A stretch of 63,960 nt of DNA, filler included, from Lenisia limosa (GCA_001655205.1; 12 parts of 12 records of this genome joined end to end with filler, not necessarily neighbours in it); one strand, 5' to 3'. Counted from the whole stretch's first letter, positions 25,491 through 32,723 are shown. The notes: generated from the sequence alone by a model not told the origin. Numbers and translations are program-made.

Positions 25491-25977
25491 TTTCCTCAGC
25501 ACTTTGACATTCGATGTGTTCACGCTTGTTGTTGACGGTGTTGGCGTTGATGATAGTAGCGTTATGATGCAGGACTGTATATGATACGAAGCTATATCGT
25601 TGTCATCCTTGTCACTAAGGGTGCGATTGATTGTTATTATTAAGTTAAAAACAGTTGAAATTTTTAAGTGCGCGATAAAATTATTCTTATAAGCGTGATG
25701 GTGTGGACNNNNNNNNNNNNNNNNNNNNNNNNNNNNNNNNNNNNNNNNNNNNTTAATTAATTAANNNNNNNNNNNNNNNNNNNNNNNNNNNNNNNNNNNN
25801 NNNNNNNNAACCTTTGTGTGCACCATTTCCCCCCTCCCCCTTCCCCTGGTCATGTAATATACCTTTTTGACCATCAAAAAATACAAACGACCAGCTTATG
25901 CACTGTAATCTTGTATGAGTTGCAGAAAAATAGTATCCTTCAATTCTCCAATTGAGGAGGATAACTCAAAGCACTAG

Positions 25978-28900
25978 AATCCTAGTTTTATACCCACACG
26001 GCCTGTTCATCTTTTTATCAGAGGATCATCCAATAATTGTGTAGTTCCGATCAACCCTGTCATCACTAGCGAAGAACCAAAATTTGAGATTACTCATTTC
26101 TCTGTCACAAATGCGCATGATATCCAATTCAGTCATAGCTCCGGTTGGTTTTTGGGTGTGGTTTTTAGTGGACATTATGAGAAACAAAAAAGGTACAATT
26201 ATATTGTCAGTTACTTCTTGATCATAGCTGATACTTTAGATGGCCTTAAATTGGCGTATATCCACGAAGGAACTGTCCGTAAATGGACCATATCGTTCGA
26301 TGGGGTAAACCTCTTTGCTGAGCAGGTTAGTTACAATACTGAGATAAAATACAATGCTTGGGCTAGTATATTATGAATCTACCGCTTTCAAATGATTAAG
26401 TCAAAACCACCCTTCACCAATCTAGGAGGCTGTTATTCCTATTCTTCTCCATGGCAGCCTTATCTCCCTTTCTTGTCGTAGAAACGCGGTTGGTTAGGAG
26501 GTTTTTTTTTCGATTTTACCACAAATATTGCTATTGTGGTGCGAAAAAAAATGCATAAATCTCCTATTAGCTTCAGATTCATTGCCAGCGGTAAAGATGT
26601 CATAACGTCGGTACCTTCAAAGCTTCTATGCTCCATGCTATCCCATATTGAGAGTACACTTCATGCGAAAGACATCTTGAATATTGCTTCATCTGGCCAA
26701 CGCCGTCATATTATAACCCATTCTGCTGAGCAGGCTGCACAACGAATAAATCGTATTGGAACAGCCCATTCGCTGTATACGTATGATTTCTCAACTCTCT
26801 ATACCAAATTCATACAGTCTGACCTCATCAATGAATTTAAAAGCACAGTTGACGAAGCCTTCACCTATATTTCCGAACGTGATAACACCTCTATTGACCA
26901 TCTGAAATTATGTCTGAAATCCGGTTTCATTCAACGCCAACATGAAACTAATAGTATCTTGTCTAAATCTGATATTTATGAACTTATCCACTGGGTTGTC
27001 TCTATTACGTATGTCCACAATGGTGATCTCACCTTTCACCAAACGATCGGCCTACCCATGGGTACCAATGCAGCTCCTCTGCACGCTAACCTTGGGCTGT
27101 ATCGTCATGAAAGGGATTTTGTCACGAGTCACGACGACACAGTGATATCAACCTTTAACGCCATAAGGTTTATTGACGATATTCTACTTATTGACCCTCA
27201 TCATAGCTTCTATAAACATATTGTATCGACATCTGATGATATTGACCCTATATATCCAAGCTCTCTACAGCTATCACAAATGTCCGCTTCCACAACCGAA
27301 GTGGGTTATCTTGGGACAGATTAGTCTTCATTGGAATCATATCAATACTTCAATTTACGATAAACGTAGGGAATTTAGCTTCAAAGTCAATCAATACCTT
27401 ATAATATTCATTCGACTATTCCAAAGCATATTGTGAAAGGTGTCTTGAACGGGCAACTCACGCNNNNNNNNNNCGCCTACAACGCTGCTCGTCTCATCCT
27501 GACCCTCAACAATAATGGATATCATATACTATTGCATTCCTTAAGAAGTTGACGATATCATTCATATTCAAATTCAAGCTCGCATTTATGACACCCCATC
27601 AAAGTAAACTGAGGGGGCTTCTGCTAAGCATCCTCACTGGCTCATAGACTAGGGGATCTCTACACCTGAGACCTAGTCCTACTATTAAGCCACTTATTAT
27701 CCCATTCTCCTATGAGGACGTTATAATCACTATGATAGTGTTTGTTCCATAAAGCCTTTGATGTCTGCAATTCTAACTCTCTGGCTCCTCCTAAGCGTTT
27801 AGGAGGGCCTACATGGGTTACTATGCAAGGACGTACGTCCTTATTCATTAATCTAATCCTTGTAGGTATGCTGGGGAGGCACGCAGAAAGCTGTGTGCAC
27901 AGAGTTGTCAGGCAAATGATTGGGTGAATTAATATTTATCGTCTATAATCATTATAACCATTATAAACGTGATGATGTGGACGGCTTTGGCCTGATACTC
28001 TTATTTTTTCTTATTTCTACATATTGTGGTGCGAATTAAGTTCATCATTTTCTTCAGAGCGAAACAGACCTGAGTATCATTTCCACCCCAACTGGTCTAC
28101 ACATTCTCAAAGGAAATGGTGGGATGCGGTTTATCTCAAAGAAATTTCAAACTGGAAATAGTTTTTTACCTTCAGAGAATGCAGTTTTTTTTTTTGGCTT
28201 TTCTTTAGGTTTCCTCAGCCTCTTCTGTTGAATAATTATAATAGTGTTCCACTCGTCGGGAAGAAGGCTGACAGAATCCTTTATCGGTTGGGGATGGTTA
28301 ACATTATTATTGTGATTACTCGCATTCATCCTACAGACATACGGTTCCTTGGCAATGGGCACGAAATAGTAGCAAGAAGTAACGATACCATCTTCGAGTT
28401 TTTGATTGACGAGTGGGGGGGGGGGTATTGGAAAAAAAAATAGTATGCGATAATTTTATAACACTGAAAATAAATATTTGTATTTTGTCCTCCTGATCTC
28501 TCACGATTTTAGGGAAAATGTAAGCAGAAGAAGTAGAAGTGCCAAAGGATATTGAGTTTCATTCATCTTCTTTTCTTTTTCTTGATTCAATGTTTCTACC
28601 ACCGTTTTTCTGTTTCCAGTGACTCTTTTTAGGCAATAGTTCTACCTGTCGATGTTTGGAGCCCTTTGGTTGTTGATATGATGGGGTGAGTTCAAGAGAG
28701 ATATGTTTATTTCCTTTGAAGTTCTTCCCTTCTCTTGAATCGTTTCTGGTAGACGCTTCTGTTTCTGTTACTAACCCCCCTCCCCCACAGCGTTGAGTCT
28801 CTTGACGTCTCTCCTTGTGGGACCCTTTTGACAATGGGAGTGACAATGGTGGAGCGGCCTTCAACTGCTCGTTCTACAATCGCGGTTTTCCCCCGATACA

Positions 28901-29430
28901 GAGGTATGTGTGGAAAACCGGGTTTTCCTTGGGGGAGATCTTGTCTCTCTCTCAATTGAATCAACAATTTAGCAATGTTACCTTTTGAAAACTTCCAACA
29001 CATCTTTGCTGAGTCCATGATTCGTATTACAAGACAGAAATCAATCAGGTTGGTAACTTAAATGGTAATAGACGCGTTTTACCAACTTTGCTTTGGGGTA
29101 GCTTCCAAGCTATTCATATTTACTGCAGTGAGTACCACCCTGTTCACCTTGAGACACTTTTGGCATCTCTCCTCTTCACGCCCAACTTCATTGCAGGTTT
29201 GATTCTGGGGTTGCACTCGTGTTAGAATCATATCATATGAGCATTCCCCACAGAGAAAGCAACTGTCTGGTTGAAGACCACCATCATATTTTATGGGAAT
29301 ATTGAAAATATAGAACCTTACCCCCTCTCAGAAAAAGTTGTTCAGCCTACCATGCCTGCTGATAAAATCAGTACTGCCAAGTCGCTTTCATGGTATTTCG
29401 ACACAAACTGTGGAAGGCACTTTGTTGATA
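25978..29430 (+). CDS. Multi-exon gene, unassigned; hosts the Penelope-like insertion in an intron
   Basis: Exon-like frames at 25978-26325, 26401-26487, 28059-28122, 28211-28290 and onward. There is a donor near 26488 and an acceptor at 28058 on either side of the PLE. Confidence 0.4.
26546..28021 (+). mobile_element. 5'-truncated, frameshifted Penelope-like retroelement (RT with no C-terminal endonuclease visible)
   Basis: KMHKSPISFRFIAS, YTYDFSTLYT, QTIGLPMGTNAAPLHANLGLY, RFIDDILL, IYPSSLQL, GYLG, then after frameshifts IYDKRREFSF and HSTIPKHIVKGVLNGQL. Flanked by a 14-bp direct repeat TATTGTGGTGCGAA at 26532-26545 and 28022-28035. Confidence 0.88.
27865..28018 (+). repeat. Family C dispersed repeat (~150-165 bp), identical in kind to the PLE 3' terminus
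   Basis: GGTATGCTGGGGAGGCACGCAGAAAGCTGTGTGCACAGAGTTGT(A/C)AGGCAAATGATTGGGTGAATT...GCGTGATGGTRTGGACGGCTTCGGCCAGATAC. Copies at 8738(-), 25685(+), 40975-41125(-), 41334-41434(+), 44624-44743(-), 54297-54356(-), 55455-55514(+), 57303-57353(-), 59734-59858(-), 60897-60930(+), 61191(+). Confidence 0.92.
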
Positions 29431-29794
29431 TCAAGTATGCATGAATAATTGTGAATCACATTCTTTTTTAAAAGGGGAATTATCCACTTTGCAAATTCAC
29501 AGAAAGGTATGTATAGCACCGTTTTCACCTAAACAACTGTGATACATTCGCAATGCTGTGATGGTGTAAACTGCTTCAAAATATGTATTTTATCATTTAT
29601 GCATTCCTCTCATTTCTCCTTCACCCCTTTCTTCCCTGTTAACATTTTAGGCCAAACAGAGTGGAGATTTCACGAAGGGCAGCCAGTTTAGCCTTGTTTA
29701 TTGAAGTTTGAGGAAGAGACTATTGTATTTTTTAGTCTTATGAATATATCATCTTGGAGGAGAAACTTAGCGTCGTTTTTTTTACTGTTTCTCT

Positions 29795-32150
29795 AGTACC
29801 TTACTTCCAATCCTTCCACTTGGAAAAAACCTGAAAACGCACCGACTCTTGGATTCTCGGAAGCGTAAGAGGGGTTTCGGGTGCCTGAATCATGTTGTGT
29901 AGTTTATATATGATATGATATATGATATATATATGATATATTTCATCAATTACACTTTCAGATTCAACTTTGATGGCGATATTCGTTCTCAAATTGATCC
30001 AACCAACCGCCTGTCCCCACTCTACTGCAAGCCTGAGGTGAGGGATGCACTCAATTTTGCTCACGAATAGTTCAAGAGTTTTCACAAATTTTCCGCTCAC
30101 CTATCACCCCCAGGAGAACATTGTTCCTGGAGTGCACAACGTTCTTGTTAATGCAGGGCTGCAGTCCGTTTTCACACCTGTTCATAAGGTTGGATTTTTA
30201 TTACTGGAGAGATTGCCCACATCATAAGAAAAGCTAGTAATTTTTCAGGCGATTGTGCAGAGTACGCGTGCCCTTGCCAGCGCAATGACAACCTGGATGG
30301 ATAGCACAGCTGCTGAGCGCTCAACTATGCTTGCTGATGACGCCGATGGTGAGGGGGAACCAGTATCTTTGATGAAACCACCCCAATATTCAACTTCAAA
30401 TTTTTATGTTTACCCCCCCCCACCCACCTGAGCTTTGTTTCGTTGTTCAATTTTTCTTATCAACCCTCGTGTGTTAATTATTAGCCAACAGNNNNNNNNN
30501 NNNNNNNNNNNNNNNNNNNNNNNNNNNNNNNNNNNNNNNNNNNNNNNNNNNNNNNNNNNNNNNNNNNNNNNNNNNNNNNNNNNNNNNNNNNNNNNNNNNN
30601 NNNNNNNNNNNNNNNNNNNNNNNNNNNNNNNNNNNNNNNNNNNNNNNNNNNNTTGCTTGTTTTGTTTTTTGTTTGTTTGGAGCTTCAGATTATTCGGTTC
30701 GTGATTAGTACCGTTACGCCCCCCCGCCAGGCACAACAGACCAGATGCTGGGCTTCACTGAGCCTGATGTTCCTTATCCACATGCGTCTTGGTCCGGTTT
30801 CATGGGTTCCATAGACAACTCACAGAGTAAGCAGGGGGTAGGGAGGCTTTTAATAAAGATACGAAGATAATAATTACAGATTTTCTTCTTTGTTTTTGTT
30901 TTTTTTACCACGTTTCAGGTTTGGTTAACCTCCTTGTACTTACCAACAAACTCCTCAACTTTGACAACCTAAAAACTGCTGTGGTGTCTGACAGGTCTGG
31001 GGGGGGGGGTGACGTGATTTTTTTTTAAAAAAAATCTCACTTTTTACAGCTGTTCAATGGGGCCATCACCTGAGAGCCTCACTAAAATTGTGCAAAACTG
31101 TGCCACGCTCCTGAGGGCAAGCAAGCTACATGATATAGCAGAGGTGCTTATTCTCCATGCAGGTGTCTTAGGTAAGGAATCGCTGATAAGTAGAATATTG
31201 GAATTATTGATGACATTTTGATGAACACAAACTTTGTTTTGGAACGTACCTGAGGTGATGATGTTATTTAATTTTGTTTTCAATCTTGTATTTGTGAGAA
31301 AGTGTAACTCAGTAGACTGCCCGTCTTCAGATAAATGCACAATCTGTGATGAAAGTGGGGATGGGGGAGTAAATGAGAAGTGCTTATAATGGTTCACTGT
31401 TTATCTTTTTGGAACAATTTCGTTATTTCAGAAATTGATGCCATTTCCTGCTTCCGAGAAACCTGTGCGTCATGTGCGTGTTGCCTGGGTGAGTGGGTGG
31501 ATACAGTTGGACAGTGGGTATTATTTGGTGCCATTATGTTGTTGTCTCTTTAAATCAAATTGATCTCAACACACCAGCTCTACTCATCTTTGTGCTTTTT
31601 TTGCTGTTCTCAACACTACCTGTCTTATCTCAGCAGAAAGGTGCCCTGTATCCCTTCTGTTGCCTTCAACCGAAACACCAGCATCAACTTGTCTCGCATG
31701 TTACCGCGAGGTTGACGGAAGAATATCTCAAGGTTAGTCTTTTATTCTGTAATCTAGATGATGACATCTTTTCAGCTTTTTCTCTCTGACCATTGTAGTC
31801 CAGCTGAAGCCGTTTGACATCGTCCCTCCTGTACCAAGCAGTAAAAGACAGACTCACATACAGAACAAAAATCCTGGTGCTGGCGGACAAGCATCTTTTT
31901 CTTCTGTTAGTTTTTGACCATATTCCCATTTTTCATATGTTCCCCCCACCCCCTTTTTTTTTGATAAACAGAACTTAACCTTTCTTTAAAGACTATGAGC
32001 GTCAGTTCCCAGTTCTCCTTTGTATCTGGTCTTTTGTGGCATCCAGCTCAAGGTGAGGTTATAACACTGTTGACTCATTTGTTCCTTTATTGATTCACTT
32101 TTCAGGTTGTCTGGGGTGTGGCAGTAATTCTTTGGTCACTTTGTAGAGTA
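29795..32150 (+). CDS. Multi-exon gene, unassigned
   Basis: Phase-consistent exons: RFNFDGDIRSQIDPTNRLSPLYCKPE|ENIVPGVHNVLVNAGLQSVFTPVHK|AIVQSTRALAS...|GTTDQMLGFTEPDVPYPHASW...; no family recognised. Confidence 0.6.
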
Positions 32151-32297
32151 GTGGTTTCTTTATGATGTCTCTTTATTAATTGTATAATATAGTAATGTTG
32201 TCCTTTATTCTATAAAGGGATTTGTCCATCACAGAAAAATAAAGTAGTATTATACATTAATAAGAATCATTACATAACCTTATCCCCATGTACTAGC

Positions 32298-32723
32298 CTA
32301 AGCGGCAACAAACTTATTGAGAAGTCTCTGGGTCACAAGGAAGCCACCACCGACGTTAATTGAAGCAACACAAACGGCAATAAGAGAAAGGATGGACACG
32401 GTTCCGTCAAGGTTGTTGTCAATAACCTGAGTAATACCACCAAGAATGACAATTCCTAAGAAAAGTTAGAAAAATTATGAAGGGTTGGAAACAACATCTC
32501 TTTTGCTCACCTGAGATAGCGTTGGAAACGGACATAAGAGGAGTGTGTAGAGAGGCCTGGACGTTGTTGATGACAGCCCATCCGACGTAGCAAGATAGGA
32601 CGAAGACGAAGAGTTGGGCAATAAAGCTAGAAGGTGAGGAAGATCAAGAGGTTTAGAGTGTCCTTCATACCTGGTGGGAGCGAAGATTGCGGCAAGAACG
32701 AGAAGAATCACACCGACCACGCC
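32298..32723 (-). CDS. NNT: NAD(P) transhydrogenase, C-terminal membrane part of the alpha moiety (5' truncated at scaffold end)
   Basis: FVLSCYVGWAVINNVQASLHTPLMSVSNAISG|IVILGG...LIAVCVASINVGGGFLVTQRLLNKFVAA-TAG; matches the PntA C-terminus. Confidence 0.93.

Follow-up and report, generated by a model that had tools for sequence, protein, structure and literature searches.

Introduction

Among the Penelope-like elements (PLEs), those with an endonuclease N-terminal to the reverse transcriptase (RT) are known as Naiad in invertebrates and Chlamys in green algae and protists, and their diagnostic features are a GIY-YIG domain, a KR-rich block, a CxC motif and a DKA motif in that order (Craig et al. 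2021, PMC8557442). This lineage is without hammerheads (PMC8557442). Here we describe a PLE copy in a window of 63,960 nucleotides, filler included, made up of parts of 12 records of the Lenisia limosa genome (GCA_001655205.1) joined end to end; the stretch analysed is 25809-32723 of this window, and all positions are counted from the first letter of the window. The 3' end of the copy is a sequence of ~155 nt, family C, which a preliminary description made from the sequence alone had taken for a free-standing, high-copy element.

We consider it quite probable that this copy is a 5'-truncated, decayed PLE of the N-terminal GIY-YIG lineage (Naiad/Chlamys clade) residing in a short host intron, and that C is the element's own 3' end, which also exists in solo form. 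The insertion would have occurred by target-primed reverse transcription, leaving a 14-bp target-site duplication, and C, being the part from which any cDNA of the element must start, would also exist as minimal stand-alone copies. All that is seen here agrees with what has been published on Naiad/Chlamys elements, and non-autonomous Chlamys partners with a common 3' end have already been described. The locus adds an N-terminal-endonuclease PLE with a clean target-site duplication, a feature that in this clade is often masked by insertion into microsatellites, together with a short terminal module whose solo copies have a fixed 5' end. Should RNA structure prove to set the end of C, by stalling of the RT or by cleavage, this would give insight into the way in which PLEs without hammerheads delimit their RNAs and give rise to non-autonomous partners.

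The insertion and its boundaries

In agreement with the preliminary description, one exact 14-bp direct repeat, TATTGTGGTGCGAA, encloses the RT, the 3' untranslated region (UTR) and C (Table 1), and it is the sole exact repeat of at least 14 nt in the stretch analysed. Taken alone the repeat is weak, as evidenced by the presence of some exact 14-mer pair in 67 of 500 dinucleotide-preserving shuffles. It is the position that argues for a target-site duplication, since RT homology starts 2 nt past the left copy and the 3' UTR comes before the right copy. Homology to every aligned relative begins at 26548, the K of KMHK, which bears out the abrupt start of the RT that had been noted earlier. The segment between the repeats comprises 1476 bp as written, 10 N included (1490 bp with one repeat), and no second copy of the enclosed 1476 bp is found elsewhere in 25809-32723. 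Together with the diverged second copy described below, these findings support the view that the repeat-bounded unit is one insertion that takes in family C.

Table 1. Coordinates and basis of the features of the PLE copy and its insertion site, as positions in the window
Feature	Start	End	Strand	Basis or remark
Putative host intron with insert	26489	28057	+	starts GTTGGT, ends TTCAG; 79 nt without insert
Left target-site duplication, 14 bp	26532	26545		exact repeat and adjoining start of RT homology
Inserted 5'-truncated PLE copy, N-terminal-endonuclease type	26546	28021	+	bounded by the duplication; homology of relatives
RT coding remnant, KMHK to C-terminal tail	26548	27647	+	open 26536-27324; TAG stop 27645-27647
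Assembly gap, 10 N	27464	27473		within RT thumb region; collinear flanks
Proximal 3' UTR, ~220 nt	27648	27866	+	not in solo C copies
Predicted RNA three-way junction	27777	27878	+	fold and inverted repeats
Family C, 3'-terminal ~155 nt of element	27867	28021	+	also occurs alone elsewhere
Predicted 8-bp hairpin at 5' end of C	27879	27898	+	directly after the three-way junction
Right target-site duplication, 14 bp	28022	28035		exact repeat

Taking out 1490 bp turns 26489-28057 into a 79-nt interval with GT-AG borders. As read from the sequence, three plus-strand segments with canonical GT-AG borders (26152-26325, 26426-26488 and 28058-28160) stay open in phase 0, and the PLE copy lies in the same orientation as this putative host gene. 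A GT-AG intron of ~58 nt in a neighbouring transhydrogenase gene shows such short introns to be normal here. Pfam and PDB searches with the putative host exons around the insert, carried out exon by exon (not joined), yielded no match. The earlier proposal that removal of the insert restores an intron of ~80 nt is hence plausible as far as the 79-nt interval between phase-0 segments goes, and no further, given exons devoid of Pfam or PDB matches; a host intron as the location of the insert is likely but unproven. The inserted copy is dead and lies in a probable intron, and no effect on the host is apparent.

The reverse transcriptase and its relatives

The open part of the RT remnant encodes 262 amino acids and retains the catalytic D79 and the FIDD motif. 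Motif A (D79) and motif B (G167) are separated by 88 residues, which form extra helices and strands in the model; these may correspond to the insertion-in-fingers domain, a lengthened stretch between the two motifs that is expected of the Naiad/Chlamys clade. At the sequence level the ORF has a sub-threshold Pfam match only, to RVT_1, and a PDB sequence search found no significant match. An AlphaFold model computed with 55 aligned relatives (mean pLDDT 86.8) has fungal and human telomerase RTs as its ten best PDB structure matches (E 1e-5 to 5e-4), with DRT, group II, retron and R2 RTs ranking below them, which is what a PLE should show.

Among 1.84 billion representative proteins there were 1617 relatives of the ORF. 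Apart from the ORF's own entry and a sister copy with 86% identity (P0002), all of them are at most 39% identical; an additional sister copy from the same source, P0151, belongs to the same cluster as P0002. The best full-length relatives comprise 920-1100 residues, with the RT match at residues ~590-950. Upstream of the RT, at residues ~2-230, an N-terminal GIY-YIG match (E < 0.01) was present in 8 of the 9 full-length relatives scanned, three of which reach the Pfam gathering score. The alignment of the relatives reads, from the N-terminus, GIY-YIG core, KR-rich block, CxC (CPCR..GCVLTGD), VDKAAN, LPYLYWxPKFHK and RT. To place the query, the full-length relatives were sorted by whether their GIY-YIG core has the CxxC of the CCHH motif, its absence marking the Chlamys-type endonuclease, and 118 RT domains were used for a quick maximum-likelihood tree, where the query falls within a clade (support 99 in the Shimodaira-Hasegawa-like approximate likelihood ratio test, SH-aLRT) that holds 21 of 21 relatives lacking CxxC and 0 of 12 having it. 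Collectively, the GIY-YIG domains of the relatives, the tree and the telomerase-like model support the proposal of the preliminary description that this RT, as judged from its sequence, is of PLE type and comes from the lineage whose endonuclease precedes the RT.

Of the two described groups, Chlamys (PMC8557442) resembles this copy in several respects: 1) the RT clusters with N-terminal GIY-YIG proteins that are without the CCHH cysteines and have the KR-rich block, CxC, DK(A) and a long spacing between motifs A and B; 2) 5' truncation is frequent and there is no canonical hammerhead; 3) the relatives of this copy assemble as tandem or circular units, and Chlamys has non-autonomous partners with a common 3' end. 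It differs in that our copy is without the whole endonuclease part and was compared by description, not by labelled sequence; in addition, the target here is not a (CA)n or (C)n microsatellite, hence the clean 14-bp duplication is visible, and the host is a eukaryote with introns of ~55-100 nt. Naiad likewise agrees in domain order, in the CxC and DKA motifs and in the absence of a hammerhead; its endonucleases, however, keep the CCHH motif and an upstream CX2-5CxxC finger, and relatives with CxxC are outside the clade of this RT.

Searches beyond the representative proteins gave distant relatives. A protein atlas search with the RT returned unnamed RT-like clusters only, and a scan of metagenome contigs returned more than 458 relatives, none of them above 33% identity to the query, on contigs of 1-6 kb from marine, freshwater and soil samples. 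Four of these distant relatives (L004, L005, L022 and L001) have identical contig ends of 127, 77, 55 and 123 nt, respectively, which correspond to assembler k-mer lengths, and three pairs (L070/L071, L021/L023 and L034/L035) are circular permutations of each other. Identical ends and circular permutation together imply that the relatives assemble as circles, pointing to head-to-tail arrays or circular DNA forms, and a head-to-tail organisation matches what has been described for PLEs. Directly 3' of the full-length ORF, non-coding tandem units were seen in L080 (3358-6510, period ~1266 nt, 93-97% identity) and in L048 (3640-4711, period 730 nt); these could be arrays of non-autonomous partners or tandem repeats internal to the UTR. 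The stop-to-stop RT segment is exactly 489 aa in seven contigs from different samples (L018, L021, L023, L034, L035, L070 and L071; 48-80% mutual identity), and versions of ~481-491 aa occur in five more (L025, L026, L055, L059 and L060). The 489-aa segments begin just past the DKA region, so that the endonuclease, if present, would reside in another frame or ORF.

Decay of the copy

Since full-length relatives place the RT match at residues ~590-950, ~585 codons plus the 5' UTR are missing at the 5' end of this copy. What remains of the coding region is broken as well. There are frame changes near 27315-27325 and 27375-27392, both 5' of the assembly gap: past 27321 the family frame shifts to another frame through ..INTSIYDKRREFSFKV.. 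and comes back to the first frame at ..IPYNIHSTIPKHIVKGVLNGQLT. A further frameshift probably follows after the gap, near 27530-27545. The left flank of the gap ends in ..NGQLT(R) and the right flank starts with AYNAARLILTLNNNGY, and because both align collinearly to the RT thumb of the relatives, the two sides of the gap belong to one element. Across the gap this copy is ~8 residues shorter than a relative, P0004, and in the sister copy P0151 these flanks are 12 codons apart. As relatives are thus ~8 residues longer than 10 N allow, and P0151 has those 12 codons, the gap probably hides ~36 nt. Counting the 10 N literally leaves the frame intact, and the real frame across the gap cannot be read; the conclusions hold either way, as the ORF is disrupted before the gap is reached. 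The sister copies P0002 and P0151 are broken at sites other than those in this copy. As judged by these reading frames, the copy is dead and every known member of the family is defective.

Family C as the mobile 3' end of the element

The 3' UTR of the PLE copy extends from 27648 to 28021, with C as its distal part. Other copies of C were found through a chance ORF of 61 aa that runs across the junction between UTR and C; this ORF was used in a search of the protein collection, and the copies were compared as translations of called ORFs only. The search returned three called ORFs of the same source, P0181, P0182 and P0183. P0181 is collinear with 27737-27929 at 52-82% identity with two frame changes, and thus represents another, diverged copy with UTR and C joined. 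This junction shows that C is native to the end of the element and did not insert here secondarily. It had been stated earlier that no C copy elsewhere carries the UTR upstream of it, which P0181 contradicts if the statement is read genome-wide.

The other two ORFs are C copies without the UTR. P0182 begins with 33 residues that have no counterpart in the element and then matches 27868-27924 perfectly; in P0183, 20 unrelated residues are followed by a match that extends from 27874 to ~28024. Accordingly, the two copies start at the same place within a few nt (27868 and 27874, at the protein level). The peptide MLGRHAESCVH, translated from 27868-27900, is identical in the four known C copies, with P0183 keeping it from G on. 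At the level of these translations, C also occurs alone with a shared 5' boundary, and the earlier view of a free-standing C with a fixed 5' start is upheld in a sample of two solo copies. Whether called a non-autonomous element or a terminal repeat moved by the PLE, as the preliminary description had it, C can be retained as a mobile terminus; the data leave a discrete element and a very short retrocopy of the same RNA side by side. A search with the solo copy P0183 returned only P0183 and P0182, one with a minus-strand ORF of the UTR returned only itself, and exact DNA scans with the first 20-24 nt of C gave no match in viral, metagenome or prokaryote genome contigs, collections that are evidently without the source assembly. 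The similarity of this C copy to P0183 continues 3 nt into the duplication, through TAT at 28022-28024; this overlap could be microhomology between the 3' end of the element and the target, or chance.

Several other identities for C were considered and rejected. As a short interspersed element (SINE), C would have a head derived from tRNA, 7SL or 5S RNA, and neither a tRNA-like head (ARAGORN) nor a 5S- or 7SL-like head (Rfam, E <= 1) was found. As a miniature inverted-repeat transposable element (MITE) or another DNA transposon, it would have terminal inverted repeats, a sign the preliminary description had named as speaking against a retroelement; no inverted repeat links the two ends of this C copy, nor is there a separate duplication around C. 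As a retrozyme, it would have a hammerhead in its repeat unit, which was found neither by Rfam at E <= 1 nor by the core motif search. The full Rfam search, covering 4227 families including all known small self-cleaving classes, gave no match at E <= 1 in 25809-32723, and in 16 contigs of relatives nothing was above gathering; the hammerhead core CUGANGA...GAAA is absent from the element's strand, and pairing of the kind seen in hepatitis delta virus (HDV) ribozymes was not seen from the 5' end of C, by eye only and not as a test. The absence of hammerheads in this copy and its relatives agrees with their published lack in the Naiad/Chlamys clade.

In terms of known short partners, the closest are MRC1 and other non-autonomous Chlamys derivatives of Chlamydomonas, which like C are short, non-coding and possess a 3' end in common with an autonomous PLE, by which they are presumably mobilised. 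They differ by forming pseudo-long terminal repeats (pseudo-LTRs) and head-to-tail arrays and by having bodies of their own, whereas C lies wholly within the 3' end of the autonomous element; no pseudo-LTR or tandem partner of this copy is present in 25809-32723. Non-LTR retrozymes also come from the terminal region of PLEs and are small and non-coding. They are, however, defined by hammerheads and tandem organisation, neither of which was found here, and the analogy drawn with them in the preliminary description fails on this defining feature. The pairing of long and short interspersed elements (LINEs and SINEs) offers a parallel in that the short element carries the 3' sequence where the RT of its partner starts, with the difference that SINEs have a head with an RNA polymerase III promoter (tRNA, 7SL or 5S), absent from C.

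Some of our own findings weigh against the reading of this locus as a truncated N-terminal-endonuclease PLE with a mobile 3' end: 1) this copy is without the endonuclease, CxC and DKA regions, and its architecture is therefore deduced from relatives at ~29-38% identity; 2) the branch of the query is long (1.8) in a tree that came from a quick search; 3) a 'Chlamys-type' endonuclease for the relatives of this copy would rest on motif definitions, not on labelled Naiad or Chlamys references; 4) the putative host intron is without homologue support, the exon searches in Pfam and PDB having come back empty; 5) the C copies were found by shared 5-residue words, a bias that makes the first ~33 nt of C look more invariant than they may be; 6) the sample comprises two solo C copies and one linked copy, as translations only, and P0182 and P0183 may be the same copies already seen in the preliminary description.

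How the 5' boundary of C may arise

The RNA around the boundary is predicted to be highly structured. The segment 27770-27905 folds as a three-way junction at -60.3 kcal/mol (z = -5.9), with the minimum-energy structure making up 20% of the predicted ensemble. Its closing stem pairs 27777-85 with 27870-78, and within it are a short hairpin 1 (27787-27806) and a long hairpin 2 (27807-27867). Position 27867, where C begins, is also the outermost base of hairpin 2, and hence the boundary 27866/27867 matches the foot of this hairpin to the nucleotide. The whole 3' UTR also folds far better than shuffles (z = -5.8), and family C itself folds with z = -3.8 on the plus strand vs. z = -2.0 on the minus strand.

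How the C boundary comes about has to be inferred from these coincidences. As the start of C is the foot of hairpin 2, an RT copying from the 3' end of the RNA would reach hairpin 2 right after completing C. We therefore surmise that the RT may copy C and stall or dissociate at hairpin 2, the short cDNA then being joined to the target, which would make the boundary a hot spot of truncation. Because boundary and hairpin foot coincide to the nucleotide, we favour stalling at hairpin 2 as the most likely source of the 5' boundary of solo C, a preference that we hold tentatively. The difficulty is that the RT would need to have melted the 9-bp closing stem and the 8-bp hairpin of Table 1 before coming to a stop.

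Second in rank, and rather doubtful, is a short RNA with a defined transcription start, made from an internal promoter in the terminal region, extending to the 3' end of the element and reverse-transcribed in trans by the PLE enzyme; C would then be a genuine non-autonomous partner. Transcription in Penelope and in Chlamys-3_cRei starts in the pseudo-LTR, which is a copy of the 3' part of the element (PMC8557442), and non-autonomous Chlamys partners with a common 3' end, e.g. MRC1, have been described (PMC8557442); the 5' boundary common to the solo copies and the apparently unchanged first ~33 nt of C in four copies would also be explained. A transcription start, however, gives no reason for a boundary at the foot of a hairpin, and the conservation signal is biased by the way in which the matches were found. 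The preliminary description had concluded that a fixed 5' end implies a transcription start or a cleavage site, which is not established, as stalling of the RT at the hairpin foot fits the boundary at least as well.

We consider it improbable that the RNA is cut at the junction 27777-27878, whether through a ribozyme of undescribed type or through a host nuclease that recognises the structure; such cleavage would be equivalent in function to the hammerheads of canonical PLEs and retrozymes. The junction is unusually stable and well defined (see z-score and ensemble share above), the boundary of C lies in its unpaired hinge, and a PLE lineage without hammerheads would need another device for processing; yet none of the 4227 Rfam families matches at E <= 1, the element's strand has no hammerhead core, the fold comes from one DNA sequence only, and stable hairpins are common in the 3' UTRs of retroelements. 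The bolder version, in which the three-way junction would be a new RNA-processing or self-cleaving device that frees the ~155-nt module, with C as the retrozyme-like partner of an undescribed ribozyme class, appears very improbable to us. Finally, it is hardly credible that a short repeat of other origin (SINE, MITE or satellite unit) lies by chance beside the PLE copy in the form of C: numerous C copies without the PLE have been claimed, and two were seen, but RT, UTR and C lie together inside the 14-bp duplication, the diverged P0181 has the same UTR-C junction, and C shows no terminal inverted repeats, no tRNA-, 5S- or 7SL-like head and no separate duplication around it.

Other features of the stretch

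Downstream of the insertion there are homopolymer runs of 9-10 G or C at 28416-28425, 30412-30430 and 30992-31010, the latter two forming an imperfect inverted pair 561 nt apart. No element was found at any of these runs, though Chlamys has been reported to target (C)n tracts. A second assembly gap (161 N, 30492-30652) is located within an apparent multi-exon gene on the plus strand at ~29900-32060. The transhydrogenase gene mentioned above is recognised by the 4TM region of pyridine nucleotide transhydrogenase (PF12769) in two minus-strand exons, 32512-32625 and 32301-32453 (Pfam E 4e-13 and 1e-10), which are split by the ~58-nt intron and are the last two of the gene. The protein stops directly after the 4TM region, and the alpha part would therefore be C-terminal or separately encoded in this organism.

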